Counted from the stretch's first letter, positions 27,815-63,505 are shown. The stretch: DNA of 64,000 nt from Rhodosorus marinus CCMP1338 (GCA_029953675.1 JAMWBK010000005.1:3100001-3164000), one strand, 5' to 3'. Program-made: numbers and translations. Notes: generated by a model from the letters alone, not told the origin.

Positions 27815-27847
27815 AGGTAGTTAGTCTCTGAATAAACGGATGATGAT
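27815..27847 (+). mobile_element. Isolated family-B 3' terminus with GAT tail, abutting the copia LTR
   Basis: ggtagttagtctctgaataaac followed by ggatgatgat matches the family-B end at about 61538-61571. Confidence 0.7.
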
Positions 27848-28114
27848 TGTTGGAATTTTCAAGGATTCGTGACCTTGACCTCAGTTTCATCCTCCAAACT
27901 TCGGTACCTTCTTTATTGTTCCACTGACTAATGGGCCGATATATTCCATTTAAGTACTCTAGTATACTGTGAAGATGATCGATATCTTGTACTGTTCAAA
28001 CTGTTTCCTCCATTTGAAACCGTAACGGTATGATTCCGCATCCACCCATCGTATGCCATGTGCGTATCGGTCTTACCGTATGTATCACGATGTGTGAATG
28101 CCCTTCTACGAACA
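27848..28114 (-). repeat. copia-1 3' LTR, 267 bp, TG...CA
   Basis: Repeated at 31985-32107 and lies next to the PPT. Confidence 0.9.
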
Positions 28115-31100
28115 CTCCCCCTCGCTCTCATGTACCACAGTAGAGAGTCGATCTACAATACCCAGCCCGGACCTCAATATCTCCGTCCTCTCCTTCATCA
28201 GAGGCTTGGTGAGCAACCATCTCGTCGGTGCTGAGGTACTTCAGCTGTACCTCTTCGGACGCACACCTCTCGCGTGCGTACTGAAGTTTGACAGATACGT
28301 GGCGCGACATCCTGCTATCCCCGGATGTCGCCCACCGCAGAGACGACGTGTTGTCCGTGTATGCAACTAAGGGCATACTAACGTCCTTGCCAGTCTCGAC
28401 GATGAACTCCTGTACCCACCTCTGGGTCGTCATCATGTCCCCCAGCGCCTGGTACTCCGCTTCCGCCGTCGATTGGGCCACCGACCGTTGCTTCCATGAT
28501 CGGTAAGCCACTGGCGCTCCATCGACTGTCACCAACAAACCTGAAGTACTCCTACTGTCTTCGTGACTGGCCCATCTCGCATCAGAGTATCCGGTTACTT
28601 GATATCTGATTTGCCTCTGCTCACCATCGTCTGAGGAGTTACCAATAGCTGGATCCGTTTTTGATTTACCACCCAATTTCATTACTTTTCCCTGCGTTCC
28701 CGCCAAATATCGCAGGGGCTGCCGCGCCTTTTCGAAATCTCCGAGTCGATAATCTGCCGTTTTTTGCGCGATCAAGCCGACTGCATAACTTATATCAGGT
28801 CGCGTTCTAGTGCTTAAGTAGAGGAGAGATCCAGTTAGCTCCTGAAACGGTGATGAGGTCATTTCCATCGAAGTCTCTTTCGTAGAGGGTGCGATGGAAA
28901 TTGGTGTGGGTAACGGGGGACATCCCTTCAAACCGTACGCGAGGGTAAGTGTGCGAATATAATCTGCCTGCGAGAGGTAGATTTCTGTTTTCCTCCGGTC
29001 TCGCACTATTCTCACACCGAGGAAATCTCGTGCCGCTCCTAGATGTTTGATGTCGTAAAGGTTTGACAACACGTTCTTCGTTATCTCAACGCCAACCCGG
29101 CTCCCAACGATAAGCATATCATCTACGTAGACCGCGATGATGCACTTCTCCTTCCGGTACACGCAGCTTTCTGTTCTCAGCTGCTGAAAACCTTGCGCAA
29201 GGAAATCGTTGCTTAGTTTCCGGTGCCACTCTCTTCCCGCTTGTTTTAGGCCGTACAAGCTCTTCCGTAGGCGCGAGACGTGCTCCGCCTTTCCCGGTTC
29301 CTCCATGCCGCGGGGCTGCATCATGTAGATCTCTTCCTGCAGGCTCGCATTCAGGTACGCAGTCTTCACATCAGCTTGCTCCACTTCGAGAGCTTCCATC
29401 GCTGCTATGGTCAGGAGTACTCGAACGTTGGCGAACTCCACCTTTGGCGCGAAGACCTCCTCGTAGTCAATGCCATGTCTCTGGGCAAATCCTTGAGCTA
29501 CGAGTCGCGCGTTGAACCGTTGAACTGATCCATCTGCATTTTTCTTGACTTTTTAGGATAAGTCGTGACCCAAGAACCTGGCTCCGAGGGACAAGTTCCC
29601 ATGTCCGGTTCGCCGGTAACGATCCGAGCTCTTCGGCAGCAGCTCGTCTCCAGTCTTCAGCGTAAGCGCCGTTGATCGCTTCATTCCAGGACTCCGGGCT
29701 CGGTACGTCGTACAAGTAGTCCCCCTTCTGCAGGAGGTTCACTGAAACCTCCCTTCCTCGGGGTCTTGAAGTCATTCGTTTTTGCAGATTAATTTCTTTC
29801 GCCGGGAAGACGTCTTCAGAAACGCGCCTGATCGCGATTATAGGACCTGTCAGTTGTCGGATCCCAGATCCTCGCCACTTGTGAGTCCGCTACGAACATG
29901 AGGATTCCTGTACTGGACCTGCTATCCAGTTTACCCTGTTTCCCCGGTTCGTACCGCTTGTATGTGATCTCACACCCAAACGGATATGCGTTTCCCAGAT
30001 CCATCTTGCTGCCCCTAACCGTCTCCTCTGGACATTTCCCTTTCAGGAACTTCTGTGGGGTTCGGTTGATGTTGGCGACGACTACCTTTAGTGCTTCCGG
30101 CCACATGTCGTCTGTCACTCCGCTGTCGAACATGGTGGCACGCAGAATTTCTGAGACTTTTCTCACCATTCGCTCCGCTATCCCGTTGCTGGAGGGAGTA
30201 TACGGGGCGCTCGGGTCCCGCGTGATACCCAGGTCACGTAGTAGGGGTTTCATGCTACTATGCTCAAGTGCGTTGTCACTTTTGAGTCTTTTTACATTTG
30301 CCCCATGTTGCGCTTTCATTACCATGACATGCTCCCTAAAGGCTTCATCAATGAGACTTCTGTGTTCAAGGGCATGCGCTCCCAGCATCCCTGTTGCCTC
30401 ATCCACGAAGACTCCTATATCTTTCTCTCCATGTCTTCCTGCACGGAACGGTCCGGCGATGTCAGTATGTATGCACTCGCCGAACGTCTCTGCCTTCCTG
30501 AGAGGTCCACTTCCACCCATCGCGGTCATCTTTGCTTTCTCGCAGCTGGAGCATTCGAACTTGTCAGGTACTTTGTCGCCCATGCGGATAACACCGTCCT
30601 TTTCTAGTTGTTTCACAGCTCCAGCACCCGGATGTACGAGCCTCCTGTGCCATCCCATGGCATCCGTATCTTCGTTGCTACGTACTACTGCTACCGCTGC
30701 TGTTTGTGTTCTGCTATTGCCGCTAATCTCCAAGTCAGTATAAAGGAGACCAGACTTTGCAATAGCTTTAATCACTTCCCTCCCATCCTTTTCTACGACT
30801 AATGTCTTTCCCTCTAAAGATCTAATGGAGAAACCGTTTTCCATCAATCTACTTAGACTGACTACATTCAATGAGCCGCCTGGAAGGTAGATAGTGTCCT
30901 TCAGCGACAATATATCTCCTTTTCGCGTCCTTAGCTCGACCGTACCCATCTTGCCGAGGGTCTTCGTTGTCCCGTCCCCGAATATGATGTCAGTGTCAAC
31001 CGTCCTTGTGGGGCCCGAGAATGCACTCTCAGAGGTGCATATATGGTCCGTTGCTCCAGAGTCCAGCACGAACCTTGCTGGAGCTCTGACCGCCGTCATT

Positions 31101-31984
31101 CCTGCGTGGAATCTTCGCGTTTCCGGCCTGGTTTCCTCCTTGTCCTGCTCCTCAGGACAGTTGGCTACGGCGTGTCCGGGTTTCTTGCACCCATAACACA
31201 GAAATCCCCTGGGGATCTTCCTCTTCTTCTTCTTCTGCACCGTTGTGACGTGGTTCGTGCTGGAATCCGTTTTGGACTTGATTTGTTTGGACCCTCGAAG
31301 TCGGTCCAGCTCCTCAAAGTCGTTACAGAAACCTGTCCAGACTGGACTTTTGTCCTTCGCGGCGCAGAACAGGAACTCCGCGTACTCGTCGCCCCTCTCC
31401 TCCAAAATCTTCCGGATGACAAGACGTTTTTCTTCATCTGTGGGCGCCACGCCCGTTGTCTCCCTGATCTCTGCAAACTGGGTTTGTAGCCAGTTCACCA
31501 GAGAGCGTGGCGACTAGTTGGTGTGCATCTCGCGCCGATACACCTTGCCCCACACGCTGTCCGCCGTCTCGCGGGAGGAGGGCTCATATCTAGCCCGAAG
31601 CGCCGCCCATACCTGCTCTGGCGCTGCCTCTCTCGAAGAGGCAAACGCAGTGTCCAGCGCCGGCCCATCCAGCACTCTGGAGAACACCGCAGAGATATAC
31701 TGTCTCTCCGCTTCCGTCGCGTCTATCGGGTTGTCGATTACATCCCTAAGATCTTTGACGGTCAGGTAGCACTCTACCTGGTGTCTCCAATTCCGGAAGG
31801 ATCGGAACGAATCCTGATCCCCGGTGAACACTGACGGTAGCGCGAAATCCTTCAAGCGCGCGTCATGTTCTGCAACACTTCCCCTCGTCCTCGCCGCCAT
31901 TCTGAGGCAACACCACGCACAATCCCTATTCCCGTAAAAAAGCACCAAGCAGCTCTTACAAAATCGCACCAAGCGATGAGACTA

Positions 31985-32107
31985 TGTTGGAATTTTCAAG
32001 GATTCGTGACCTTGACCTCAGTTTCATCCTCCAAACTTCGGTACCTTCTTTATTGTTCCACTGACTAATGTGCCGATATATTCCACTTAAGTACTCTAAT
32101 ATACTGT
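31985..32107 (-). repeat. copia-1 5' LTR, truncated where family A begins
   Basis: Matches the first ~123 bp of 27848-28114 with about 3 substitutions, then breaks off. Confidence 0.9.
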
Positions 32108-32117
32108 AAGAAAAAAA

Positions 32118-34228
32118 TAGGGGTGGGATTTTCCGGGGGTTGCGAACTAATCACCCATACGATCGAGCTCGAGCGAGCCAGTAGGCCTGATTGGGTCGTT
32201 TTGGTAGTTGAATTCCGTAACGCGTTGAACAGCGTCTCGCGGACGCATGCTTTGGAGGTGATTCGCAGGTTATTCCCGGAGGCGTGGCCGTTCCTATCCG
32301 GTATTTACGGAGGGGGGAGCCTCCCTTACTTGACAGCGCAGGGCTCTGTTTTTGCAGCACGTACTGGCGTTCAACAGGGTGATCCTTGTGGGCCGGTACT
32401 TCACGCCTGTGCCTACCATGACGACGTGACGTTGCTGGGCACTCCTGAGCACATGGCTCGGGGACTGACCCAGATCGAAGCAATCGCGCGTGGAGTAGAT
32501 CTAACCGTGGAACCCGAAAAATGCCGTTTTCTCGGCCCGCGTGAAGTTTCGAGGGGCTCCCTGCCACCTAGTCTCCGGGCCCTTGGTGAACATGCGGGGC
32601 TCGAGCACCATGGCGTCGGTTTCGGGAGTGACAACTTTGTCCAAGACTCTTGCGAACAAGTTTTAGCGCGCCATAAGCAGCTCACCGAGGCCATTGAGCG
32701 CCTACCGGATAGCATGCTCCAATCGGCCTGCCTGCTCTCCCGCTTTTGTGCCTGCCCCCGACTGAATTACTGGCTGCGAAGCCTTCCACCGCACTGGGGC
32801 TCGTGGATGGCAGCCAAGGCGGACGAGGCGACGCTGAAGCACTGGGGAACGCTCCTGGATGAACCCCTGGATGTGGAAGCGGCTCCTGACAGGGACCTAA
32901 TTCGTGGCCAGATTGCCCTACCTTTGCGATTAGGCGGATTTGGAGTGGCCGACCGTGGACTCGTATGCTCGGCAGCGGCGGTCGCCTCCTGGGCTACCGC
33001 GCTTCGCACCTTGGTGAGTTTTCGGATGCGAAGTGCTTGCCTTTTGGATAGAGCACTGACTAGCGAAGACCCCGTGACCCTTCCGCCGCCGCTTTTGAGT
33101 ATCTATGATGCTCTGCAACAGGCGTTCAGCAAGCGCAACGCCGTGCCGGACGAGAGCCGATCCAGATTTCCCTCCTGGAAGGAGCTGTTATGGGGACGAA
33201 CTGAGGCGCTCGAGGACTCTCCCATCGACAGAGTACTCGCCGACGAGGGGGAAGCTAGCCCCGGGTCACCGGTTGCCGATTATCCGGGTCTGAGCCGATT
33301 GTGGAGCTCGCGCACTGATGTGATACAACATAGCCTCACCTGGGGCCAACACAGTGCCGCTCACGCAATCTTGCTCAACTCTCCACTCACGCCGCCTAAC
33401 ACCGCCGCTCGCCTCCGCCGTATGGGAGGCCATCTTTCACATTCGTGGTTAACGACCCTGCCGTCATCACTGGGTCACCGTCTGGATGCCTTCCAGTTTC
33501 GCTCTGCCGCACGGATTTACCTGGGTTTGCCACAAGCTCCGCGGCACTCTAATCGGCCGTCTTTCTGTCAGGGATGTGAGAGTCGGATCGATGCTTGTGG
33601 TTACCATTTCTTAGGTTCATGCGAACTGTTGAGAGGTCTTCGTACGAGGCGTCACACTCGCTTCAAGTACATTCTCAGCGAATGTCTGACTCGGGTAGGG
33701 CATACGGTTGAGGTGGAATCGGAACTACCCAGATCGGTCTCGGACAGGGCACCGCCCCGCTGTATCGCAGATCTCCTCGTCTCCGATGCTGCCGCCAGAC
33801 GTTCAGCATATGTTGACCTCGCGATTACATGCCCTATGGCAAGCGCCCTTCTCACGGCTGCCGCCCGCGGCCGGGGAGCAGCTGCTTCGGCCCTTCGCCG
33901 CGTGAAGGAACGACGGTATGCTGAGAGTATGGCCAGCCTGCCTCGCGCTGAGGGTCGCTCCCACCGGTTCCAGCCTTTCATTGTGGAAAGCTTTGCTCAC
34001 GTGGAGAAGTCGGGTTTGGAGTGGTTGCGGAAATGTTTCACTGAGCATCCTGTTGAATACTTGGAATTTTTGCGGCGCTTAAGTGTCTCTCTGTGGCGAT
34101 ATTCGAGCAGCATGCTTGCCGAGGCGCGCCATCGGCGCCTGGGTTTGCACGCTTCCCTACCTAGTTCTTAGTTCCTTTTCGCGGTTTGCGTAGCGTTGTA
34201 GGCTATGCTAATAAAGCCAGTAAAGCCA
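32118..34228 (+). mobile_element. CRE-like non-LTR element, family A, 5'-truncated (ORF 32123-34171)
   Basis: GVGFSGGCE, FRNALNSVSR, GVQQGDP, AYHDDV, LPLRLGGFG, CQGC...HFLGSC...RRH, IADLLV, YVDLAI and FQPFIVESF, i.e. RT, zinc knuckle and REL. Confidence 0.92.
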
Positions 34229-36308
34229 ATGTACGAGATCGGGTTTCCGTCCAGGTATGCGACAGTGCCGGTTACGGATTTTCGGTCCTTTGGTGATGAC
34301 CATGACGCGTCTACGTAAAGTGTGATCTCCTCCTGTTCTTGACAAGGAGAGAAGACTAGTGATGCGTTGATTGTGCCTCGCAAGTACCTTAATATTCGCC
34401 TTCCAGCTGACCAGTAGTCGTCGTTGAAGCGTAGCGCCTTTTGTGGCTAGTAGCGTAACTGGCGTGATGTCGGCTCTGGTTCTTGTAGAAATGTACAGTA
34501 GAGCCCCGATGAGTTCTCGGTGAGGGAACTCTTCTTGCCTTCCGGACTTGTCCGTTGGTATATAGTCCCTTGTCATCGGCGTTGGTACTGGTTTGCTCTC
34601 GCTCATTCTAAAGTCTTCAGTATTTTCTCGATGTACTTCTTCCGCCCCAAGGAGATGGATGATGTTTGGGGTCTCTCGCGATTTCGATGCCAAAGTATTC
34701 TCTCGCTGCGTTGAGGTCTTTCAGATCGTACATTGTGTGTAGCTGCTCCTTAACTTCTGCCACCCGTTGTTTGCTTCCGATGATTAAGAAGTCATCGACG
34801 TATACCACTACGACTAGGTAGACACGTTCCTTTACGAAAACGCACGGGTATGTAGTTGTTGCTTTAAAGCCATGACCTTGTAGGCCTTTCCTTAGCTTCT
34901 CGTACCATACTTTCAGGTACAGCTTTAAACTATAGAGTTTAGCCTGCAGACCCAACCATTGTCTTATGTGCCCAGGGGGTATCTCCTCATCGAGTTCGCC
35001 ATTAAGGTAGGCCGTCGATACGTCAATTTGTTGCACGTCGTAGTTACGTTGGGCTGCCACTGAGAGCATTACTCTGATGCTGTTGAAACTGACCTTCGGG
35101 AAGTACACTTCTGTAAAGTCTTGCTGCTGGAAACCGCTTGCGACTAGCCGTGCTTTGAATTTCAGAGGCTCCCCGCTCCCGTTCCGTTTCAGTTTGAAAA
35201 CGAATTTGTTGCTTGACTCTTGCTTATCCTTTGGTCTGTCCACCAGCGACCAGGTCTGATTCTTGCTCAGACTTTCGAGCTCGTCCGCGATTGCTTCCTC
35301 CAAATACTTCTCGTGGGGTCCATCCCGCGCGAAGTATTGCCAGCAAGGGCTTCCTCGATGGTTTGAGGGTCCTTGATTATTCTCAAGCTGTTCAATGTGG
35401 GTTTGGATGTCGTGCTTGATCTTATCTGTCGCGGTAAATTTGTGACTTCTCTTCTTTCGTTGTTTGTTCGTTATTCTCACGATCTTCGAGGCTGTTGTCA
35501 GGTTTCACATCCTCGATGTGAGGTCTAAGGTGGGTTTTACGAACTGGTGTTTCTAGTTCATCTTCGCAGCTCGATTGGTCCGGATTCTGACTGATGTAGT
35601 CTTTCGCTTTGGCGTAGTCGATGGCTTCTTGGATGTCCGGTGTAAGTGCGGCTTGGGGATCCTTCAGAGGGAAGGTTTCCTCCTGTACTACTATGTGTTT
35701 TGTCTATCTTTTGCGACCATCTCCGAGTTGGATCAGTCAGGTGCCTGCCGCTTCGCTCACAACGGAGTATAATCCCACGCATCGTTGGCGAGTTTGTCAC
35801 GTCGCATATAACCATCTTCCTTTGGTTCTGCGCGATCGCTAGGCAGGGGAAAGAATACATGTTGCGGAAGTACTCTTTCGTGCAGGTAACCATTTCCCAA
35901 GGGCTTTTGTTGTTCCCTCGCCTTGGTCTTCCGTTTAGGATCCTTTCGATGATTTGGAGGATCTCTGTATAGGAGTTCTTCCCTATGCCCGATTGGTACA
36001 GGAATACCCTAATGAGCATCAGGATACTCCGGCTGGTTCGCTCCGAGATCCCGTTTGCTTCCGCGCTGTACGGGGGCGTTGTGTCTAGGGTGATCCCTAG
36101 CTTTTCGAATTTTTCTTGCATCCCTAGGGGTATTCATTCGCCTCCCCCCCGTCTGAGCGGACGGTTATTATCCTCTGACCCGATAAGCACTCGAAATACA
36201 CACATATTCATCGAATACCTGGGAGGCGTCGGTTTTTTTCTGTATCGGATATATTTTTGGAAATCTCGGTACCTCGACTGTGAAGGTGACCTAATATTCT
36301 GCTCCTTT

Positions 36309-39300
36309 TGATACGAACGAATGGTTTTTTTCCCCTCGAGGCTGAAAAAAAAACCCCGAGGGGAAAAAAAGACTAAGCGCGGCGAAGTACTCGCGCCTCC
36401 AACATCAAAGCGGCATTCATGCGCCACAGCAGGAAACTTAAGCGGGTAAACAACGATTGAAGACGGTCAGGGCGTTCGCGGAACAACTCCCGAAGCCAGC
36501 GAGAACCAACAGAGTCCATGAACCCAAAGCACTCAATGATCAGGGGTACCAAGCGATGTGCTAGTGCCGAAGCACGAACACCAGGGGAAGACAAAGCCCC
36601 CGCGTATTTGATCTCTTTGCGGCGTCTCATGCTGGCGGCGGCAGATCCACGGCGCTCCCCCGCAGCCGGGAGATAACGACTAGCTTGAGGGTTAGGAACA
36701 GCAAGATCAACGTATGTGGTACGGCGGCTGTCGTCACAGGTGATCACCAGGTCGGCTACACGGCGTTCATCATTTTGAAAGTCCGCGACGGGTAAAGGTT
36801 TCTCACGTTCGATTTCCAGACCGGCTTGCCGGACTATAGGCCGAAGTTCCCGGTATAACAGGTTCAAGATCCGTGTGTGGCGGCGGGTTCGAGCACCTTT
36901 CACCGCCGGGCAACTAGCGAGCAGGTGGGCGCCAAAATCTGCGTTGTCTTCAGTCTGAGAGCAGAGAGGGCACGACGAACCCATCTCGTACGGCCAAGGG
37001 GGCTGATGTAAGCCGAGGTATAAGCGCAGTGAAGTACGCACTTCGAAATCCGACAGTGTGAGTGGCGGAAAGGCTGGTACGGTCATGAGCCACTGAGAGC
37101 TAAGAACCCCTCCAAGACTACGTAGGCGGGCGCGAGCGCGAGAAGATGAGACCATCTGCGCGAGGAGTCGGCCATATGCAGCACGGTGCAAGTCCCAAGA
37201 AAGGATATTTTGCAGCGCATCCGTGCGTGCTTGAGCTCGGCTCCCAGCGCGCTGGGAATCATCAGGAGGATCAACTGGAACTTCTTCTTCTGCGGCAACC
37301 ACTGGGTCAATCTCCCCTAGAACAGGTTCAGGCGCAGGACGAATCCCCGGGGCGGAGCCTCGAGAGCGGTCAAATACAGCTCGCCAGTCAGGAAGACGGG
37401 GTTGAACGGTTTCGGGGAGACTAGTACAGGAATTCAGGGCGGTTTGGAGCTCCAGAAACAAGTCTTGGGCGCTTTCCGGTACGCTGGGAAGCAAGACACC
37501 CCGCGAGAGGCTCGCCATCAAATTGCGGAACTTCGAGATACCCAAGCTGCTCAAAGTGGGAAGTGCGGTTCCCCAGGCCCCTACTGCGGCTGCAGGTTGG
37601 ACCACAACACGATTGCAGAGGCCCAGTCCCCCAATCGCAATGGGAGGCCTACCTGGGGGCGCACAACATCACAGGTGGGTCGCGGCAGAGCGCTCAGCTC
37701 TTCATCGAGAAAATACCCCAGGTCACGGAAACTTTCAGCATCCGCACGAGTGGCCAACCGCCGGCCCCAATGAGTTGGAAGTGAGCGAAGCCAATAGGTT
37801 AACCGCTGACTGCAACAATACCGAAACAGCAACAACGAGCACTGGAGAAAGCCCGGAGGTAGCCGTCGAAGCTCTGCAACCAGCTGTCTGTGCTTACCGA
37901 GGAGCTGCAGCAACTCGCCTTCAACGAAGGACGGCGACCCGTAGGGGATGCCTAAGTGGACAAAACCATCCGGTCTCCAAATATCCTGGAACGACGCAGG
38001 TACCTGCTGCTCTTGTGCAGCTACACCTCCCCAGTAGAACGATTTGTGATGATTAACCTCCAGGTCAACCCGCGAAGCCAAGGAGCGGAGACGATCATAA
38101 GCGAGTGCTAGAGTATCAGGGGGCCCCAGGAGGCACACGTCGTCGTGGTATGCAACCGTACGAACCTGCGGGAATTCGGAGCGAAGACAAAGCAAGACGA
38201 GTTGTAGTCCACAGGCATGTAGGAAAGGGGACCAGGGATCACCCTGTTGTACCCCTGTGCGCGCCGCAAACGTGTGTGAGGAAGCGCCAAGGGTGTCATA
38301 GGTAGCCCCACGACCAAGCGGAGAATAAAGTCTACTAACAAAGGGAAAGCCTACGGGGAAGACTTCGCGCACCACGTGCATGAGAGCCGGACGAGAGACG
38401 CGGTTGAACGCATTGGTAAAATCTACAGAGAGGAGCCCAGAATCTGGGGAGTACGCCATTTCCGAACGGATTAAAACAGACAACAACTCACAGCCACCAC
38501 GATAGCCCACGCCTAACTGCACGTGCCCAAAGAAACGGCGGGATTCGGGAACCAGGATTTTCACTAACCATCGCGCCGCCAATTTGCGGACCACCTCAAC
38601 CAGGCCAATAGGGCGAATAGCAGGGCTCGAGGCCGTGTGGCCGGGCTTCGAAAGCAGACACAACTGCGAACGCCCGACCAAGAACCACGCACACTCACAC
38701 AGGGGATCACCATTCACAAGCGCTTCGACCACCCACGCCAACGCCTCAAACCTTCATCACTTAAGAAACGGAGATATTCCACCCGCAGCCCCGAGGGCCC
38801 TGGGGAACGGCCCTTCGGAGCATCATGAACCAACTCACGCACCGCCTCCAGATTGACCACTAACCGCGCACTGGGATGTGGCGCGGCGCGGTACTCTTCC
38901 AACACTGATTCAAACGAGGAGTCCCAAGGGGAGCCTTCCGAGGGAAAGAGCAAACGGAGCGGTGAAGAAAGATCATCGGAGTATGGAACCACAGGTTGCC
39001 GCTGCTGCAGGATCCCGGCTGCCCGCCGCAGATCACCGCCTGCCACCGCGTGACGCGCCCGATTCTGTCGAGAAGACCTAAAAGCTGAGGAAGCACTAGG
39101 AGAAAAGGAAGAGAGAGAAGCGAAATAAAGACGTTCGAGGTCCTCAAAGTCGCCGGAAAGGAACATTTGCAGTTTTCGGCGAGGGTGGACCCGGCGAGGA
39201 TGTGGGTTGAGGGGGACGGTAGAGGATGTGAGCACGAGGCGGGGAAAAAAAAAGAACAAGAGTTCCCAGCGAAGAGAGCAGTGAGGGTTCGCGGCGACCT

Positions 39301-41053: not shown

Positions 41054-41335
41054 CTGCTTCTTTGGGCGGGAAACGTTGTCAGCTTTGCGCATGCAGCCAT
41101 TGCGCCTCTTTTTTTTGTAGAATTTACAACCCTTGTCGAAGTTGACGTTGTATGTAACCTTTCTTCATGATCGCAGGCACAGAGAAGTAGTTTCCCTCGA
41201 TGGCAGGTGGGTATAAAACGTCCTCGATCGTTATTAGTTGTCGCCTATTGCCGACTGCCGTTGCGATGACCACTGTTCCTCTTTGATTTCCGCTGATCGT
41301 TCGTTGGTCTGCGAGAGTTACAGTATTGATCTTGG

Positions 41336-41568: not shown

Positions 41569-41620
41569 TATTGATCTTGGATTCGTTGATTGTCGCGAAC
41601 AGACTTCGTTCGCCGGACAT

Positions 41621-45570: not shown

Positions 45571-45605
45571 GACGAAGTTCGTGAAGAGAAAACTTGATAC
45601 GTAGA

Positions 45606-49018: not shown

Positions 49019-49035
49019 CGGACTCCGGACGAGGG

Positions 49036-52000: not shown

Positions 52001-52376
52001 GTTGGGCCCGTTTCCCGTGATCGAGAAACACTCTGATGTGGCATACACTCTGCAGTTACCGGATGAAATACGGATACATCCGACATTTCACGTTTCTTTG
52101 CTAAAAGGTGCCCCTACGTGTCCTCCGAATTCTCCGATACGGAGTATCCCTCTCCAATCGGATCTCTATTCAACGTTACCGATCCTGTCGGTATTGGGAG
52201 TCCGCCATGCGGCTACCGGTGTCCGACAGTTCCTATGTTATCGCGAAAACGAATCCTGGACTGATGCCACTTGGATACCCGAGCCGGACTACCCCACCGA
52301 TCTACAATCTCGACGACGCTTACGACACTACCTCAATTATCGCAAGGCGCTTGACGCGCTACCTTCAACTTCTTGA
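49036..52376 (+). CDS. gypsy Pol (PR-RT-RH-IN-chromodomain-like) with one frameshift near 51557
   Basis: LIDTGA, LDLRSGYWQ, MPFGLKNAP, YVDDIL, TDASDTG, SMDFI, STAYHPETDGQTER (restored by +1 nt), WLGPF and DATWIPE. Confidence 0.93.
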
Positions 52377-52403
52377 GTTTGTCCCCAAACTCGGCGGGAG
52401 GAA

Positions 52404-52643
52404 TGTTAGAACTTGCCCTGACAGCTGTGTAATCTATGTAAGACACTCCCTACTTTAGTGTAAGATCTCACTACTTTAGTGTAAGATCCCTACTTTAGTG
52501 TAAGACGCTAGTGTGCTAGTATTTCTACTTTACTGTCAGGCACGTCTTAGTTTACAGTTACCAAGACTATATAAGACCTAGCATTGCTAGATCTTGAGAC
52601 CTAGAATGGAGTAAAGGACAAGTTGGTTAGAAGAGTTATAACA
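52404..52643 (+). repeat. gypsy 3' LTR
   Basis: Direct repeat of 47958-48197. Confidence 0.95.
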
Positions 52644-53202
52644 CCATGCTTGCTTCTTGGTTATATGGATACTGCGTACCAAGTCCTATCTACTTTGTTG
52701 AAAACGCCTCCTGCGCAGAGATATGTTTTAGCGAATAAGGTCTTGACACGCGCCCGCGTTTCTTTAATGCTTGATTTTGACCGTTTCTCTTTCCAATCCC
52801 TCGCCCCTTCGGATCTCCTTGATCGGTTTCGGCCCATTTTGAGCGGCTTTCAACGGTTCAGAAAAACCCGCTAGATCGGCTCCCAAATAGGGGTTTTCTC
52901 CATGCTCCTGTCCAAGATTTGCCTTGCCTCGGAAACTTCGCTTTTGGAGAATCATCCTGACTTTCCTCGGGTGTTTCCGCTGGGCGTCTTTCTGTCGGTG
53001 CGGAGCCCCGTGACGACGTGGGGAAGCCACCCTCTATGGATGTACATGTCGACCCTGAGGTGGACCCGCTCGCCATTGAGCCGAGCACCCCTTCGCGCTT
53101 TGGCTCAGGGGAGGGTCTCCGGCTCATTAGGGGCTATCTGTGCCTCCCTCTCCTCTTTGCGTGCCCCTAAGCTCAAGCGTCCTCTCTTGGCGCCAGTTGC
53201 GG

Positions 53203-56200
53203 CAGGCCCCTAGTTTTTGGTTTCGTGAGGGTGTATGGTGCTGGCTTTTGGTGGTTTTGAGTCGCTATTGTGTTCTTCGGTGGGAGGCGCTTCTTTCTGC
53301 AGCCTTTCCCCCGCATCTTCTAGTGGTGTGGTGCGTGCTGGGGGTTGCTAGCGCCCCTTGGAGGTCGTGGTGGTTTTTCTTTGGTTGCAAACGTTGGGAA
53401 CAAGTTTTCTTTTTGGGGGTTTCGTGGGGGAATCGGTTTTTCACACCTTCCAATCGTTATGGTTGGGGTTTCCCCACCCATTCCGGCGGACGGAGCCGTT
53501 CTCTCAGCGCGCGTGGAGCTCTGCGTGGGCGGGTTTAGTACCGCGGCCACCCTCACGGACTGCGCTGACGAGTTAGCCCATGGGATCTGCTCGAAACTGA
53601 CGAGTCTTCTTGTGACTGCTTCCCAGGAACACCGCCTGCCCCTGCTGATCGCCTATTTGGAGCGCTTCTCCGCCTCCGCGCCTGCCCCATACCCCCCGGT
53701 GCCCGTCCCCGCGGATCCGCACGGTACAGCGGGGCCTGCCTCCACCCGACCCGAGCGCTCCGCTCCGGTCATTCCTGATTCCGACTGGCCTACCCCTATT
53801 CAAGGACAGACGCCTCCTGGGCCCGCGTCGGGCCCGAATCCTGCTCCCTCCAGTGCCCCACGTGCGACCTATTCGCAGGTCCTACGCAGGGGCTCTTCTG
53901 AACAACGCACGACGGCAATGGTGCGTGTGATGCCACAACACATCCCTATTGACTCTTCTCGCCAACTATCTCCGTTCCACTTTGTTTGGATGACGAACGT
54001 GCGTCCCCAGACCCCCTCTCGTGGTCGGGGCCGCGCGCCCGTCCACTACCGCGATTTTCGCGACACCATGGCTTCCTCCCTTGGGGTCGCCCCGTCTGAA
54101 TTCCTATATGTGGACTTCACGGGCCCTCATGCCTGTTTTCTTGTTACTGACTCGGCTTACCAGTTCCTTCAATCGCTTGTAACCACCCCCGCGCCCCAGC
54201 GCTCTGCTCTGGCCAACATGATACTGACTCGTCCTCATGTCTCTTTGTTTGTCGAGTTCGATCGTTTTGACGCCGGCTGGGTTCCTCCGTCGGCCTTGCA
54301 AAACCTGGATGCCTCGCAGGCTTCGGTTGTCGCGCTACACACTCATGCGGCGCGGCTCTCGCGCATACAGGCGAGCCTCTTCGCGCGTTTTCCTCCTCGC
54401 GGGGTCCTCCGCACCGCGCTAGAGGCCTTCCTCTCCACTGAGGCCACCCTGCTGGAAGCTCACCCTGCGTTTGACCTTCTGCCGCCGACTCTTGAGCACC
54501 CTTCCTCCCCTCGCCCTGTCTCCGAGGCTCGTGACACCGACATGGCAGAAGCACCATCGGCCTCTCCGAATCCGCTGGCTCTGGACACCCTCAGTCAAGA
54601 CTCCGCTGCTGAAAACCCTGTGTCTACTTTCTTCAGGTCTTTTAGTTCCTTCGTGCGCCCTCCACGTAAGCGTCGTGCGGCTCCTGAGCCTCCCTCCGAG
54701 GCACCTCCTCCGGATATTCGATCTGCCTTCCCGACTGAGGGGAGGCCCGATGTCTGAGTCTTCCTCCTCCGCGTGCGTGTCGTCCTGGTTACCCTTGTTT
54801 ACCAGTGACCGCTCAGCCTGGCATGAGCGTGTTCTCTCGTGGTTTTCGCACCTTGTCGCCTCCTACCCGGACGGTTCCCTTCCCCTTTGTCGTCAGAGCA
54901 CGGCCGTACGGCTCCCTCGTCGACTTCATAAGCCCCTAGGATTGGTGTTGGATTTTCTCTGGCAGCAGGTCGCCGCGAACCCTCACTGCTCTCTTCGCTG
55001 GGAACTCTTGTTCTTTTTTCCCCGCCTCGTGCTCACCTCCTCTACCGTCCCCCTCAACCCACATCCTCGCCGGGTCCACCCTCGCCGAAAACTGCAAATG
55101 TTCCTTTCCGGCGACTTTGAGGACCTCGAACGTCTTTATTTCGCTTCTCTCTCTTCCTTTTCTCCTAGTGCTCCCTCAGCTTTTAGGTCTTCTCGACAGA
55201 ATCGGGCGCGTCACGCGGTGGCAGGTGGTGATCTGCGGCGGGCAGCCGGGATCCTCCAGCAGCGGCAACCTGTGGTTCCATACTCCGATGATCTTTCTTC
55301 ACCGCTCCGTTTGCTCTTTCCCTCGGAAGGCTCCCCTTGGGACTCCTCGTTTGAATCAGTGTTGGAAGAGTACCGCGCCGCGCCACATCCCAGTGCGCGG
55401 TTAGTGGTCAATCTGGAGGCGGTGCGTGAGTTGGTTCATGATGCTCCGAATGGCCGTTCCCCAGGGCCCTCGGGGCTGCGGGTGGAATATCTCCGTTTCT
55501 TAAGTGATGAAGGTTTGAAGGCGTTGGCGTGGGTGGTCGAAGCGCTCGTGAATGGTGATCCCCTGTGTGAGTGTGCGTGGTTCTTGGTCGGGCGTTCGCA
55601 GTTGTGTCTGCTTTCGAAGCCCGGCCACACGGCCTCGAGCCCTGCTATTCGCCCTATTGGCCTGGTTGAGGTGGTCCGCAAATTGGCGGCGCGATGGTTA
55701 GTGAAAATCCTGGTTCCCGAATCCCGCCGTTTCTTTGGGCACGTGCAGTTAGGCGTGGGCTATCGTGGTGGCTGTGAGTTGTTATCTGTTTTACTCCGTT
55801 CGGAAATGGCGTACTCCCCAGATTCTGGGCTCCTCTCTGTAGATTTTACCAATGCGTTCAACCGCGTCTCTCGTCCGGCTCTCATGCACGTGGTGCGCGA
55901 AGTCTTCCCTGTAGGCTTTCCCTTTGTTAGTAGACTTTATTCTCCGCTTGGTCGTGGGGCTACCTATGACACCCTTGGCGCTTCCTCACACACGTTTGCG
56001 GCGCGCACAGGGGTACAACAGGGTGATCCCTTGTCCCCTTTCCTACATGCCTGTGGACTACAAGTCGTCTTGCTTTGTCTTCGCTCCGAATTCCCGCAGG
56101 TTCGTACGGTTGCATACCACGACGACGTGTGCCTCCTGGGGCCCCCTGATACTCTAGCACTCGCTTATGATCGTCTCCGCTCCTTGGCTTCGCGGGTTGA

Positions 56201-57955
56201 CCTGGAGGTTAATCATCACAAATCGTTCTACTGGGGAGGTGTAGCTGCACAAGAGCAGCAGGTACCTGCGTCGTTCCAGGATATTTGGAGACCGGATGGT
56301 TTTGTCCACTTAGGCATCCCCTACGGGTCGCCGTCCTTCGTTGAAGGCGAGTTGCTGCAGCTCCTCGGTAAGCACAGACAGCTGGTTGCAGAGCTTCGAC
56401 GGCTACCTCCGGGCTTTCTCCAGTGCTCGTTGTTGCTGTTTCGGTATTGTTGCAGTCAGCGGTTAACCTATTGGCTTCGCTCACTTCCAACTCATTGGGG
56501 CCGGTGGTTGGCCACTCGTGCGGATGCTGAAAGTTTCCGTGACCTGGGGTATTTTCTCGATGAAGAGCTGAGCGCTCTGCCGCGACCCACCTGTGATGTT
56601 GTGCGCGCCCAGGTAGGCCTCCCATTGCGATTGGGGGACTGGGCCTCTGCAATCGTGTTGTGGTCCAACCCGCAGCCGCAGTAGGGGCCTGGGGAACCGC
56701 ACTTCCCACTTTGAGCAGCTTGGGTATCTCGAAGTTCCGCAATTTGATGGCGAGCCTCTCGCGGGGTGTCTTGCTTCCCAGCGTACCGGAAAGCGCCCAA
56801 GACTTGTTTCTGGAGCTCCAAACCGCCCTGAATTCCTGTACTAGTCTCCCCGAAACCGTTCAACCCCGTCTTCCTGACTGGCGAGCTGTATTTGACCGCT
56901 CTCGAGGCTCCGCCCCGGGGATTCGTCCTGCGCCTGAACCTGTTCTAGGGGAGATTGACCCAGTGGTTGCCGCAGAAGAAGAAGTTCCAGTTGATCCTCC
57001 TGATGATTCCCAGCGCGCTGGGAGCCGAGCTCAAGCACGCACGGATGCGCTGCAAAATATCCTTATCCTTTCTTGGGACTTGCACCGTGCTGCATATGGC
57101 CGACTCCTCGCGCAGATGGTCTCATCTTCTCGCGCTCGCGCCCGCCTACGTAGTCTTGGAGGGGTTCTTAGCTCTCAGTGGCTCATGACCGTACCAGCCT
57201 TTCCGCCACTCACACTGTCGGATTTCGAAGTGCGTACTTCACTGCGCTTATACCTCGGCTTACATCAGCCCCCTTGGCCGTACGAGATGGGTTCGTCGTG
57301 CCCTCTCTGCTCTCAGACTGAAGACAACGCAGATTTTGGCGCCCACCTGCTCGCTAGTTGCCCGGCGGTGAAAGGTGCTCGAACCCGCCGCCACACACGG
57401 ATCTTGAACCTGTTATACCGGGAACTTCGGCCTATAGTCCGGCAAGCCGGTCTGGAAATCGAACGTGAGAAACCTTTACCCGTCGCGGACTTTCAAAATG
57501 ATGAACGCCGTGTAGCCGACCTGGTGATCACCTGTGACGACAGCCGCCGTACCACATACGTTGATCTTGCTGTTCCTAACCCTCAAGCTAGTCGTTATCT
57601 CCCGGCTGCGGGGGAGCGCCGTGGATCTGCCGCCGCCAGCATGAGACGCCGCAAAGAGATCAAATACGCGGGGGCTTTGTCTTCCCCTGGTGTTCGTGCT
57701 TCGGCACTAGCACATCGCTTGGTACCCCTGATCATTGAGTGCTTTGGGTTCATGGACTCTGTTGGTTCTCGCTGGCTTCGGGAGTTGTTCCGCGAACGCC
57801 CTGACCGTCTTCAATCGTTGTTTACCCGCTTAAGTTTCCTGCTGTGGCGCATGAATGCCGCTTTGATGTTGGAGGCGCGAGTACTTCGCCGCGCTTAGTC
57901 TTTTTTTCCCCTCGGGGTTTTTTTTTTCAGCCTCCGATTAAACCATTCATTCATT
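53203..57955 (+). mobile_element. Family C element, second copy: ORF1 53459-54757, ORF2 54750-57898 with one frameshift near 56635
   Basis: Nearly identical to 36309-41053 in the opposite orientation. Tail attaaac-cattcattcatt. Exact 9-bp TSD cagttgcgg at 53194-53202 and 57956-57964. Confidence 0.95.
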
Positions 57956-60730
57956 CAGTTGCGGGGGGAAATCCTTCTGATTCCGTTGCGGATTCGCATC
58001 CCGTAGACGCTTCCTCCGTGGTGAGGGAGCAGGATGTCTGAGTCTTTTAGGGAACATTGCGAGCTTCCTGCTTTCTTTTCGAGCCCAGGTAGCTTTGAAG
58101 ACTGGCGTTCTCGCCTTTTCTCTTGGTTCGAAGGGTTCGTTGGGCGTTTTCCTTCTGGGGATATCCCTCTTTGCCATCGTTCGCCCCCAGTCTCTCTCCC
58201 TCATCGCTTGCGCGGCAGGGTTTCTTTTTTTTTTTTTGGATTTCCTGCTTATGGAGGTGGCCGACCATCCTCAAGCAGCACTTGGTTGGGAGCTTTTGTT
58301 TGTTTTTCCTCCGCTAGTGCTCACGGTCCCCCAGGGGCGCCATGCATGTCCAATTAGACGCAAAGTTCAGTCTTTTCTGGCGGGGAACTTTGCTTTCTTG
58401 GAATTTTTACACCTTGCTAGTGTTTCTTCTTCCTCTTCGTGCGGCACTTCACCTTCTTCTCGTTCCCGTAGGCAGGTACGGGCAAAGGCAGCAGTGTGCT
58501 GCCTTGGCACAGGGGGAATATCGGACGGCCATCCTTCAGCAAGGCGCTTCAGTCGAGCCTTATCGGACTGACCTGGCTGATCCAGTCGCCGTGTTGTTCC
58601 CAGCGCGACGTGAGTTGGAATTCTGAGTTCCAGCGTGTCTTAGATCCTTTTGTCGATTCCTCACTCGGTAGGGCTCGGTTGCTTGTCCCGCCTGATGAGG
58701 TTCTGGCTCTGCTTAGGTCCGCTCCGAAAGGTCGTGCACCTGGTCCACTCAAGACTCCGGATCGAACTTTTTCACTGGTTGGGTGAAGAGGGGCTGGACG
58801 CCCTCGCGCGGGTACTGGAGGGTCTTGTCAAGGGGGGCGATTTTTGCGCAGAGGCCTGGGCACTATTGTCGCGCTCCCAAGTGGTCCTCTTGCCCAAGGC
58901 TGGACATTCAGACCAGACGCCTTCCTTTCGCCCAATCGGGATGTGCGAAGCATTGCGGAAGCTGGCGAGCCGCTTTCTATCCCGTCAGCTCACTAGGGAG
59001 GCCAGGTTTTTTTTTGGGTTGACCCAGGTCGGTGTCGGCTATTCAGGAGGCTGTGAACTGGTGACGCGCATCCTGCAACTGGACGGTCTCCGCGATGAGC
59101 CCTTGCGCACGCTTTCGGTGAATTTCGGCAACGCGTTTAACAGTGTGTCGCAAGCACACGCGCTTGAGGTAGTTCGTTAGCTCTTCCCCTCTGGCTTCCA
59201 GTTCCTACGTCGCGTATATGGTGAAGCGCCAAGCGGGCCCCGATTTGTCACCTTAGGTGCCGAGAGCCACAACTTTGCGGCTCATACGGGTGTGCAGCAG
59301 GTCGATCCCTTAGGGCCGTTCCTGCACGCCTGTGGATTGCAACTGGTGCTGTTGCGGATGAAACATCAGTTCCCGCGGGTCCGTGCAGACGCCTTCCATG
59401 ACGATGTGACGCTCCTTGGCACCCCTGACGATGTGGTGCCGGCCTACGATTTTCTTGGCGAGGTGGCTTCCTTGGTGGGGCTGCGTATAAACCATGCCAA
59501 GTGCGATTTTGGGCGGGATCTCACTGCACCGCGGACGCGGTTCCATCCAGGTTTCGAGACATTTGGTCCGCTGAGGGCTTCCTCCTGTTCGGTGTCCCCG
59601 TGGGCACCCCGATATTTGTCGAACGCACCCTCTCCGCGCTACTGAGTCATCACGATGAGCTCCTGACTGAGCTTTGCAGTCTCCCAGAAGGGTATCTCCA
59701 GACCGCTCTGCTCATCTTCCGCTTCAGCGCGTGTCAGAGGCTGACCGATTTTTTGCGGCAGCTACCATCCGAGTGGGGGTCTTGGCTGCCGCTCCGCGCA
59801 GACCAACGAGCGAGGGATGTGCTAGGCATTCTGATGGATGCTGAGCTGTCTGTATTGGGGGATGTAGAAAAGGACCTGCTTCACCGACAGATCACATTGC
59901 CCGTGCGGTTGGGCGGCCTGGCCGTGGCATCCTACCCGGCGATCCAGCCGGCCGCTGTGGTGAGTTCGTGGGCGAATGCGCTTAATACGTGGTCTACGGA
60001 GCGTGATCCGCATGTGAGTGGTTTCTTGAGAGGGCTTCGGGTTGGGAGGCTGGATGCGACTCTCGCCTTGCCCTGCGGCTCGGTTTTTTTTTTTGCGGAA
60101 CTGGAAGCGGCTTCTCAACGATGTACTGCCCTACCGATTGGTACCCAGGCTCGTTGCAATTCCTGGGGGGCAAATTCTTGACTCACTCAACGGCCAGCAT
60201 TCGGGAGTTTCTGCTGCAGCGCCGTGTGTTGTAAATGGTGTAGAAACTGACGAGGATATGGACGCGGTGGCTGTGCCGTCGAGAACCCCTGAGGAGGGCG
60301 TTCCCCGGTCGGGTCCGGCCCCTTCGAGGACCGATGTAATCCAAAAAACCCCTTCGTGGGACATACATTGGGACTCGTATGCCCCCCTTCTGAGTTCACC
60401 TTCCTGCTCGGCTTCGACTTTAGCTCGACTGCGCGGTTTGGGGGGGAGTCTCAGCTCCTGCTTCTTCACGGTCATACCTGCGTATCCGCGGTTAGCGCTC
60501 GCCGATCTCGAACTTCGTGTAAGCTTACGACGGCACCTGGGGTTGCCGCAACCCCCTTGGCCTGTTGCGCGGGATTCTAGATTTGCATGGGTCGGGGCAA
60601 ATGGGCTTTGGGGTGATTATGGTGCGCACTTGTTGGCGTCTTGTGCGGAGGTTCAAGGGGCCCGGACCAGACGCCATATGCGGCTCAACCGCTTGATTTT
60701 CCGCTACCTTCGTTCTCAATCGCTCGGTAC

Positions 60731-61225
60731 GGACCGAGAAGTGGAGTATGAGGTCCCTCTGGCGGTGGCATCGGAAATTGCGGACGAGAGTGACGCCTCA
60801 GCGGTACAGCGGGTGGCGGATCTCGTTGTGTCTGATCTAAATGCGCGTCGCAGTGAGTACATTGACATATACATCCCTTGTCCTCAGGCGAGCAGGGACC
60901 GAGACGTGGGGTATGAGGTCCCTCTGGCGGTGGCATCGGAAATTGCTGATGAGAGTGACGCCCCAGCGGTCCAGCGGGTAGCGGATCTCGTTGTGTCTGA
61001 CCTAAATGCGCGTCGCAGTGAGTACATTGACATATACATCCCTTGTCCTCAGGCGAGCAGGGACCGAGACGTGGGGTATGAGGTCCCTCTGGCGGTGGCA
61101 TCGGAAATTGCTGATGAGAGTGACGCCCCAGCGGTCCAGCGGGTAGCGGATCTCGTTGTGTCTGACCTAAATGCGCGTCGCAGTGAGTACATTGACCTCT
61201 CCATCCCTTGTACTCAGGCGACCAG
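60731..61225 (+). repeat. 3 x 165-bp in-frame tandem repeat of the REL catalytic core in family B
   Basis: Units start at 60731, 60896 and 61061; each encodes 55 aa, DREVEYEVPL...QRVADLVV...EYIDIYIPCPQASR. Confidence 0.97.
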
Positions 61226-61571
61226 GTACCTGCCTGCGTCCGCTCGGCGTCGAGGAGCTGCAGCTCGGTCCATGCGGCGTGTGAAAGAATCGCAGAATGC
61301 GGCAGCGATGTCAAACCCTACCTTTCTCGATTCGGCGGTGACATACCGGTTTGTCCCCTTCATTATTGAATGCTTTGGCTTGATAGATAGTGTAGGTTCT
61401 CGCTGGCGCGAGATATCTTTCGCAACGACCCAGGGCGTCTAGATAGTCTGCTCACGGAGCTTTCTTTGACCCTGCGGCGGTCAAATACTGCTTTGTTTGT
61501 AGACAGTCGTCATCTCCGCGTTGTCCCTCGCTTCTCAGGGTAGTTAGCCTCTGAATAAACGTGATGATGAT

Positions 61572-62370: not shown

Positions 62371-62383
62371 GGATCTTGAACAT

Positions 62384-62509
62384 GCGTCTAGATAGTCTGC
62401 TCACGGAGCTTTCTTTGACCCTGCGGTGCTCAAATGCTGCCTTGTTTGTAGACGCGCGTCATCAGCGTCTTGTCTCTCGCTTCTCACGGTAGTTAGGCTC
62501 TGAATAAAC
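62384..62509 (+). mobile_element. Family B 3' fragment
   Basis: Matches 61435-61560. Degenerate 17-bp TSD at 62371-62387 and 62510-62526 (3 mismatches). Confidence 0.85.
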
Positions 62510-63505
62510 GGATCATCAACACGCGTTCTACGCAGAAAGTGATATTATGCAAAAACCAAATGACAGCCTGTCTCTAAATGAATAGCCTTCTAGAAGCTAA
62601 ACTTATTAGATTTAGGATATACTCTCGCATTTGCTCAGCCGGAGAAAGGGTAAACAAATACCGTAGATACGACTTCAGTATTGGTTTAGCGAGAAAGAAG
62701 AGGACACAGCAAGGTTAATTGGGGAATAGATTAAAGGTTGTCGTCTAGAGCTAGACTAATTAATTGAGAAGAGAAAGCAAGAGAAAGTGTGGTGGTATTG
62801 GACATAGGGTCCTATACTCTAAGACCCCAGGTATAGTGTATACTCTAGAGGTGAGTGAATGAGGACCGTCCATCGTAGTCCGAGACTACTAAAGTTAGAG
62901 TACTTAGAATTCATTGTTCATGGGGTCAGATACACAAATAAAGGAAGGTGCTACCGCTGTTTGGGAAAAGGTTACTAACAGAGGCAATTTTCTACATGGT
63001 CTCATCGCTAGTGCGATCACAAATACCTTTGTGCGATGGAAACCAGAGTCAGTTTGGCTGAGAGGGATCACCGAGTTTATCAAGGGTGGGTATCGGTGTC
63101 CTGTTGTTGATGAGGCGGGAAGTAAACGCCTCACGACCCCCTCCCCCCCCACCCCCGACCCACCGCGGTTCTCGCCCAAAGCTGTATATACTACGCAGCG
63201 AGGCGCGGGCAAGTGCAAAATATTTTTTTAACCCTATGGTTGCTTTGCCCGGTGGTGGGGGGTAATTAGTTGATTTCCTGCCCAAGCGTAGTAGATGAAG
63301 GAAAGTGGGAAACAACTATTGTCACGAAATGGGTATGAAGGGAGGTCGGATGGATGGTCGCGCGGAGGGGGGGAGAGGGGGAACTGGGATTATGCTAGTC
63401 TTGGGATTGAGATGGTAAGGGCTTACCATCTCAACTGGATTGGTTGTTGAGGCATGAGGCTGTTTTTAAAGTTGAAGATATGATGATAGAGATTCTGGAG
63501 TAAGG

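Follow-up and report, generated by a model that had tools for sequence, protein, structure and literature searches.

Tails of short tandem repeats are known from several clades of retrotransposons without long terminal repeats (non-LTR retrotransposons). The I factor ends in (TAA)n and UnaL2 in (TGTAA)n, both with slippage (PMC3747384), whereas Rex3 ends in (GATG)n and Rex1 carries variable oligonucleotide repeats after a conserved 3' untranslated region (UTR) (PMC6274825). For L1, pairing of the poly(A) tail with the nicked target is accepted (PMC3812793). Clades bearing a restriction-like endonuclease (RLE) are mostly target-specific, often for microsatellites, and HERO is largely non-specific (PMC4640811). 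The present analysis concerns the 3' ends of non-LTR elements in a 64,000-nucleotide stretch of the red alga Rhodosorus marinus CCMP1338 (GCA_029953675.1, JAMWBK010000005.1:3,100,001-3,164,000), referred to below as the window, which is located 23-87 kb from an end of the 3,187,197-bp contig. Self-comparison, reading frames and direct reading showed that copia, gypsy and non-LTR elements form a nest at 27.8-62.5 kb of the window. The non-LTR families end in short repeat tails that are family-specific and that, where target site duplications (TSDs) were readable, derive from the insertion and not from pre-existing microsatellites. No transposon genes are annotated in this region of the assembly, and the genome paper of R. 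marinus reportedly contains a single mention of transposable elements.

The window was read together with two loci retrieved via paralogues of a methyltransferase gene described further below. One of them (L002) prolongs the window to 74.3 kb and the other (L003) comes from contig 12, and the R. marinus sequence covered was about 95 kb in total. The non-LTR families A, A', A2, A-short, B, C-lineage and D were distinguished in these loci, where they are dispersed and mostly 5'-truncated. About 30 3' ends were read, 10 of family B, 8 of the C lineage and at least 12 of the A lineage.

The end of family B follows the pattern ...CTCTGAATAAAC, continued in most copies by N(T)GATGATGAT-like sequence. 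The family B 23-mer GGGTAGTTAGSCTCTGAATAAAC was matched eight times in the window against zero expected, and a short copy at 41630 supplied a ninth end, in agreement with the nine B ends with mostly TGA/GAT tails listed in a first-pass annotation made from the sequence of the window. These ends are located at 27837 (+), 41630 (-), 41682 (-), 42668 (-), 43808 (-), 45547 (-), 46449 (-), 61560 (+) and 62509 (+) and are followed, in the same order, by GGATGATGAT, CTGATGATGATG, GTGAAGAAGAAA, CTGATGACATGC, TGATGTGG, GGATCGCC, GGAAAGAGG, GTGATGATGAT and GGATCATCAAC. A tenth B end, at 9434 on the minus strand of L003, reads GAGAAAC-AGATGATGATG. Tails of the (CATT)/(ATTC) type were found at the eight ends of the C lineage, the subfamilies of which are about 67-84% identical to the family C of the window across their 3' ends. 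They end in ..GATT[A/G]AAC or AAGAAAC, followed by CATTCATTCATT, CATTCGTTCG.., AAATTCATTC.., AAATTAATTCCTTCATT.. and similar sequences. The annotated family C end, ATTAAAC followed by (CATT)n, was recovered in copy 2 (GATTAAAC and (CATT)3, 57936-57955) but not in copy 1, which has AAAAAAC followed by CATTCGTTCGTATC. The A-lineage ends consist of tandem, degenerate units of 8-10 nt, RTAAAG(Y)CCA or (CCA)n. Examples are GTAAAGTCCA TTAAAGCCCA GCAAAGCCCA GTAAAGCCCA at 3302-3345 of L003 and ATAAAAACCA GTAAACCA CCA CCA at 45606-45630 of the window, the latter comprising the family A end AGTAAAC plus CACCACCA (45606-45620) that had already been annotated correctly. Addition of CCA by a host enzyme was considered for the A-lineage CCA ends, and nothing was found in its favour.

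Period 3 in the B tails and period 4 in the eight C-lineage tails both gave a stronger signal than any of 20,000 random samples from this genome. The tails are specific to their families and differ from random sequence. Poly(A) followed none of the about 30 ends, as had been noted from the outset for the window. In a distant relative of the reverse transcriptase (RT) (P0003 in locus L006, 25% identity), the end is a long (TAA)n tract. The contigs of two other relatives, P0001 and P0002, break off ahead of the end of the element's open reading frame or about 100 bp beyond it. One proposed tail was withdrawn. The sequence TTACGGTTACG had been taken as the tail of family D, but a second copy (L003, 19026-19100) is homologous through ...ACGTT[A/C]GTCTGGGGTT, so the element runs to at least 27109 and CCCAGTAAAGC at 27075-27085 is internal to it. 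The claimed D end (27076-27096) was also located outside the range 27815-62526 to which it had been assigned.

The tails vary between nearly identical copies. The bodies of four A2 copies are 97-99% identical, but their tails range from about one to at least six degenerate units, which are separated by variable dinucleotides, and copies 1 and 2 of family C differ in their tails (CATTCGTTCGTATC vs (CATT)3) despite 99.4% identity. Copy 1 also carries GAGGGGAAAAAAA (36325-36337, minus strand) where copy 2 carries CGATTAAA. The exact reverse complement of GAGGGGAAAAAAA is present about 30 nt upstream as TTTTTTTCCCCTC, and the two make a perfect 13-bp hairpin, an arrangement that resembles the product of a snap-back or quasi-palindrome event at this 3' end.

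Credible TSDs were found at eight insertions (A-short, A, B4, B5, B6, B9 and both C copies), with chance rates from 0.06 to below 0.001. The simulated false-positive rates were 0.058 for a 6-mer, 0.019 for a 7-mer and at most 0.006 for 8 nt or more; allowing one mismatch in 10 nt gave 0.006, and allowing three in 17 nt gave 0.0005. Fuzzy candidates (6 of 8 nt) at C-like and B-like copies in L003 were left out of the statistics, because a search space of this size yields them by chance. In six of the eight insertions a tail is located between the conserved end and the TSD, and the tail therefore came with the insertion. The 5'-truncated family A copy (45599-46342, minus strand; copy 45606-46340) ends in CCAGTAAAC (45614-45622), followed by CACCACCA (45606-45613) and flanked by the TSD TCT(ACGT) (45599-45605 and 46336-46342). 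B4 (42658-42971, minus strand; 297 bp, 42668-42964) has the tail CTGA (42664-42667) and the TSD TGACAT (42658-42663 and 42966-42971). B5 (43793-43853, minus strand; 34 bp, 43808-43841) has the tail TGATGT (43802-43807), three additional T at the 5' junction and the TSD GGAATATGG (43793-43801 and 43845-43853), and B6 (45530-45579, minus strand; 24 bp, 45547-45570) has the tail GGATCGCC (45539-45546) and the TSD AACTTCGTC (45530-45538 and 45571-45579). Copy 2 of family C (53194-57964, plus strand) is full length, with 9 additional nt before the body (53212-57943), and its (CATT)3 (57944-57955) directly precedes the second copy of the TSD CAGTTGCGG (53194-53202 and 57956-57964). Copy 1 (36310-41055, minus strand; body 36338-41055) ends in ..AAAAAAAC (36324) and carries the tail CATTCGTTCGTATC (36310-36323) and the TSD AAAG[G/A]AGC(AG) (36299-36308 and about 41056-41063).

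The two remaining insertions have no added tail. A-short (41326-41581, minus strand), a 232-bp 5'-truncated A-lineage copy (41338-41569), ends in ..GTAGAACCA, and its body end ..ACCA is placed directly against the perfect 12-bp TSD CCAAGATCAATA (41326-41337 and 41570-41581), which begins with CCA, the tail unit. B9 (62371-62522, plus strand; 126-bp copy, 62384-62509) is followed directly after AATAAAC by an imperfect 13-bp TSD, GGATCTTGAACAT / GGATCATCAACAC (62371-62383 and 62510-62522), which extends to 14 of 17 matches, and the tail-like GGATC inside this 13-17-bp TSD is target DNA. The repeat was never present in the 5' flanks, and this, together with the tails inside the TSDs, excludes microsatellite-specific insertion as a general explanation. 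The first-pass annotation had itself raised the possibility that the repeats were pre-existing target DNA; this applies to the GGATC of B9 as the exception. Among the TSDs quoted there, CCAAGATCAATA, TGACAT and CAGTTGCGG are real, and the 4-bp ATGT is indistinguishable from chance.

Very short 3' copies of about 13-40 bp were common and include B1, B2, B5 and B6 (13-38 bp). Two orphan C-type micro-insertions, consisting of an end plus a tail, were found in the window, TTTAAAC CATTCATTCA (43495-43515, plus strand) and TAAAC AAATTCATTCATAG (43938-43955, minus strand), and an orphan piece of the same make, AATAAAT(CCA)6, was found at 11173-11199 of L003. Head-to-tail pile-ups were observed at three places, each in one orientation. 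In the window (41618-42036, minus strand), B3 (41682-42036, tail GTGAAGAAGAAATT) is joined to B2 (41630-41667, tail CTGATGATG), and the flanks of the pair show only ATGT as a candidate TSD. In L002 (16810-16900, minus strand; about 70.3 kb in window coordinates), an A2 tail of at least six degenerate units is followed by a 13-nt A-short-type end, CTTAGTAGAACCA, then by CCAGTAAA(TCCA)3 and then by a C-type tail, AACAAAATTCATTCAATT, so that terminal fragments from at least two more families, of A-short type and C type, are stacked behind the A2 tail. The third pile-up (L003, 19090-20800) is a tandem array of at least six 5'-truncated A' units, with a 609-bp segmental duplication of a three-unit block and junctions with 0-5 additional nt. 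The pile-ups fit slippage or template jumping and insertion into earlier tails equally well.

The sequence ahead of the tails was also inspected for structure. For the A lineage a 7-bp hairpin without any variation (GCGUAGC...GCUAUGC) was predicted immediately ahead of the units, which in the A' element of the window reads GCGTAGCG..GCTATGC and is followed by the terminal units ATAAAGCCA GTAAAGCCA (34211-34228). For family C a 9-bp long-range stem, UUGGAGGC / GCCUCCGA, was predicted to end just before UAAAC, with one-sided changes only. For family B, GUUUGU was predicted to pair with AUAAAC, with two compensatory pairs, both in one copy. A pairing of the B tail (UGAUGA) with an upstream UCAUCA in the 3' UTR was rejected; the tail of B3 is changed without a compensating change. 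Rfam and tRNA scans of the window gave nothing, so no ribozyme resembling that of hepatitis delta virus and no tRNA-like end were detected. The family B end had 0 matches in a metagenome scan, and the 39 metagenomic matches to the A-lineage hairpin were all unrelated, apparently bacterial coding sequence.

The account that we lean towards is specific recognition of the 3' end by the RT combined with repeated or abortive copying of the terminal unit, and we infer that microhomology helps and is not required. The RT would recognise a conserved 3' UTR hairpin or closed domain followed by ...TAAA(G)C. Synthesis of complementary DNA (cDNA) would then begin at a short terminal unit that is particular to each family (A, CCA or RUAAAG(Y)CCA; B, UGA/GAU; C, CAUU), and this unit would be copied repeatedly or abortively via slippage or re-initiation on the RNA 3' end. 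Each insertion would gain its own number of slightly degenerate units instead of poly(A). An RT that frequently halts within a few to a few dozen nucleotides and resumes at an RNA 3' end would also yield the 3' fragments of 13-40 bp, the orphan micro-insertions and the head-to-tail arrays in the same orientation. Pairing between the RNA tail and the nicked target, over 2-5 nt, would be used when available, which may have been the case in about half of the readable events.

Several points weigh against this account. The tails could be transcribed from donor copies and not be made anew at each insertion. The B copies are about 88-90% identical, and their tail differences could go back to several master copies or to subsequent decay. 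With 8 events the sample of TSDs is small, and the register comparison described below was defined post hoc and is suggestive. The predicted 3' structures are almost invariant, and the covariation is too thin for proof of them. The C copies, whose frame breaks at five consecutive G, may not be autonomous or may have been assembled wrongly. Finally, the arrays could stem from repeated insertion at one spot.

The first-pass annotation had proposed that the tail anneals to the nick. In the strong form of this proposal, annealing selects the target and gives a family-specific bias, which includes insertion into earlier tails. We consider the strong form unlikely, although parts of the evidence agree with it. 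When the repeat phase was set by the last tail nucleotides and the nucleotides over which the TSD continues this phase were counted, the continuation was 3 nt in A-short (CCA/CCA), 3 nt in B4 (TGA/TGA), 2 nt in C copy 2 (CATT/CA) and 0 nt in A, and B5, B6 and C copy 1 were off-register. In-register continuation of at least 2 nt was thus seen in three of seven TSD events, with a binomial p of about 0.007 that comes from these three events and from post-hoc definitions. With the TSD of B9, GGATC(A/T)T.., which is similar to the B tail, the register match rises to 4/8, and when any repeat phase is allowed it is 3/8, near chance (about 0.19-0.25 per event). Within each pile-up the orientation is uniform, which annealing to an earlier tail would predict, and pairing of poly(A) with T-rich targets is accepted for L1 (PMC3812793). 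Together, the matches between tail and target give weak support for pairing with the insertion site. However, A, B5, B6 and C copy 1, four of the eight events, have clear TSDs without any tail match, and pairing is therefore not required. The TSDs inside one family also share no common motif, and the inner copy of B3-B2 lacks a TSD of its own, so that template jumping in one composite event is the favoured origin of this pair.

It is quite unlikely that the tail acts as a small guide, with RNA-DNA pairing mainly setting the site and the cDNA start, earlier tails serving as preferred landing pads and so giving rise to the pile-ups in one orientation, and the unit being copied in a telomerase-like manner.

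AATAAA, ATTAAA and AGTAAA are classical variants of the poly(A) signal, and they may not be those of this alga. If the hexamer were a genuine signal, the tail would be the spacer to the cleavage site, the RNAs would be polyadenylated and the RT would start internally, upstream of the poly(A). The position of the hexamer, always 1-2 nt before the tail, and the length of most tails, about 4-15 nt, would agree with this, as would the flank after the copia insertion next to B1, which reads AAGAAAAAAA. Against it stand the lack of poly(A) at all of the about 30 ends and the fact that ends with the variants ATTGAA, AAGAAA and GAGAAA still carry a tail, and we consider a true poly(A) signal very unlikely. 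The same variants, among them ATTGAAC and AAGAAAC in the C lineage, do not fit the uniform poly(A)-signal-like hexamer of the first-pass annotation. A-lineage copies contain up to six successive hexamers, each of them a part of the repeated unit. The B hexamer is predicted to pair with the upstream GUUUGU, and in view of the predicted stems the hexamer can alternatively be read as part of a structure and not as a poly(A) signal.

That the elements are microsatellite-specific, like Dong, Togen and some HERO elements, and that the repeats are pre-existing target DNA is highly improbable, for although RLE-bearing lineages often target microsatellites (PMC4640811), the GGATC.. of B9 is target-derived and P0003 ends in (TAA)n, the 5' flanks are without the repeat, the TSDs are unrelated unique sequences outside the tail, insertions are found inside other transposons and near genes, and half of the (GAT)3 tracts in the 95 kb are located exactly at B ends.

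The families are classified, on their predicted proteins and insertion footprints, as non-LTR retrotransposons of the RLE type with two open reading frames (ORFs). Full-length copies have two ORFs, and copy 2 of family C contains ORF1 at 53345-54757, an RT frame at 54471-56684 and a CCHC/RLE frame at 56660-57898. The RT frame matched Pfam RVT_1 (1.2e-11) and, in a phmmer search of PDB, L1 ORF2p (2e-10) and R2 proteins (4e-9), at about equal distance to both. The C-terminal frame aligned with the start of the R2 CCHC/RLE region, HxxxxCPAVxGARxRRH, with E = 0.0013. The published REL motif is C-x1-3-C-x7-8-H-x3-4-C-x9-10-RHD/N ... E ... R/KPD-x12-14-D/E (PMC12857005). Families C, A' and A2 match it as CxxC-x9-11-H-x4-C-x9-RHT ... 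E ... [IV]AD-x13-D, with the deviations of a longer C-to-H spacer, T for D/N and A for P; family D has RHD and RPD, and in B8 the CxxC is lost. An apurinic/apyrimidinic endonuclease (APE) was not detected, as a Pfam search with the 737-aa frame, which includes about 390 aa upstream of the RT, gave RVT_1 alone. Footprints of target-primed reverse transcription are present in the form of copy sizes from 13 bp to about 4.9 kb with a common 3' end and TSDs of 6-17 bp at the eight insertions. A fixed target as in the CRE clade (CRE1/2, SLACS, CZAR and MoTeR-like elements, with spliced-leader genes or telomere repeats as sites), to which the first-pass annotation had presumed the elements to belong, was not found; the insertions are in gypsy fragments, other non-LTR elements and unique DNA, and their TSDs are unrelated. 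In a protein homology search, the best database relative of the family C RT had 33% identity and the closest proteins were anonymous (25-33%). The family C RT is without a close relative in the protein collection, and the algal transposons studied here are therefore not annotated there.

The frame between RT and CCHC/RLE is broken in both C copies at a run of five G (56633-56637; about 37.6 kb in copy 1), and the A' element (32123-34171) reads through the homologous site in one frame. Either the assembly contains a homopolymer error at this site or the two copies share a defect; a true defect would mean that both C copies were mobilised in trans.

The R. marinus families appear, from their sequences, to work like the L2/UnaL2, CR1, I, Rex1 and RTE/Rex3 clades without being members of them. 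UnaL2/L2, the I factor, Rex1 and Rex3/RTE share with them a conserved 3' UTR hairpin, in R. marinus a predicted one, followed by a short tandem repeat without poly(A), a repeat number that varies between copies and has been put down to RT slippage, frequent 5' truncation and TSDs (PMC3747384, PMC6274825). In contrast, these known elements are of the APE type, whereas the R. marinus families have a C-terminal CCHC/RLE and no detected APE, and the R. marinus tails are very short (1-4 units), with a unit of 8-10 nt in the A lineage. With the RLE clades (CRE, R2, R4/Dong, NeSL/Utopia/Togen and HERO), they share an RT followed by CCHC-RLE and an association with simple repeats that is common there (PMC4640811). 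The order of the REL motif, C..C..H..C..RH..E..xxD..D/E, is kept, and the [IV]AD variant recalls the RAD of MoTeR/FoTeR (PMC12857005). The R. marinus insertions have no fixed target and are not in spliced-leader genes, ribosomal DNA, small nuclear RNA genes or telomere repeats, and unlike microsatellite-specific RLE elements (Dong/R4-type, Togen and some HERO), the R. marinus elements do not have a microsatellite on both flanks. For the R2 RT, Bibillo and Eickbush reportedly observed end-to-end template jumping and non-templated additions in vitro. Such jumping, which belongs to a site-specific element of animals and to in vitro conditions, would explain composite insertions, the variable 1-2 nt between units and chimeric pile-ups of the 3' ends of different families.

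The remaining elements of the nest are as follows. The 3' part of a family D element (26314-27109, plus strand) consists of an RLE frame (26314-27009, with the RHD and RPD motifs) and the 3' UTR. B1 (27816-27847, plus strand) is a 22-bp 3' fragment ending in CTGAATAAAC (27837) with the tail GGATGATGAT, and it abuts a copia LTR. The copia-type element (about 27848-32111, minus strand), recognised by self-comparison and reading frames, shows neither clear TG..CA termini of its LTRs nor a clean 5-bp TSD (best ATGAT vs AAGAA; 27838-27850 and 32105-32125). It parts the B tail from the A-rich stretch AAGAAAAAAATAGG, which precedes the truncated A' element (32121-34228, plus strand). The latter is 5'-truncated within the RT and contains a single RT-CCHC-RLE frame (32123-34171). 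A copia fragment is located at 34.2-36.3 kb. A 98-bp unit is present in two repeats (88% matches) at 43055-43248, in DNA between B4 and B5 that is not assigned to any element.

B7 (46437-47183, minus strand) is a 735-bp 3' part with its end at 46449, followed by GGAAAGAGG, and is placed head-to-head with B8. B8 (47184-61571, plus strand) is an apparently full-length family B element of about 4.9 kb with the end CTCTGAATAAAC (61560) and the tail GTGATGATGAT (61561-61571). It is interrupted by a gypsy-type element (47958-52643, 240-bp LTRs, TSD CCATG) and by copy 2 of family C (53203-57955), and its pieces are located at 47184-47957, 52649-53202 and 57956-61560. In the endonuclease-coding part of B8, a 165-bp unit is repeated three times (60731-61230, 95% matches), which triplicates the ..VADLVVSD..YIDI.. 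active-site segment.

Two kinds of host gene were recognised around the nest. A Met-zincin gene (DUF4953/DUF5117) at 13281-16076 on the minus strand consists of frames of 572 and 319 aa, which are annotated as one protein of 899 aa, NDN08_001928. The 572-aa frame (14358-16076, minus strand) is 100% identical to NDN08_001928. The division of the gene into two frames, annotated as one protein, implies that an intron of small size or a shift of frame is located at about 14.24-14.36 kb. Three paralogues of an LCM/TcmP-like S-adenosylmethionine methyltransferase were found at 44112-44933 and from 63437 to at least 64000 of the window and at 10001-10822 of L003, in transposon-rich surroundings near contig ends. 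Their best source-named matches outside Rhodosorus are bacterial (53-59% identity), and the family may have been acquired horizontally and may be located near chromosome ends.

As a kind of retrotransposon end, the repeat tails are not the novelty that they had been taken for; non-poly(A) repeat tails, RT slippage and pairing between tail and target have all been described in other non-LTR clades, and the present evidence contains nothing beyond what other non-LTR elements already show. If the strong form of tail annealing were true, priming guided by the tail would be relevant to the choice of priming sites by R2-like enzymes. For a catalogue of the non-LTR families of R. marinus, the defined 3' ends, tails and TSDs are a practical starting point. 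With these families, red algae contribute a dispersed RLE lineage that is not site-specific and has repeat-tailed and apparently specifically recognised 3' ends, a combination that is better documented for the APE-type clades.

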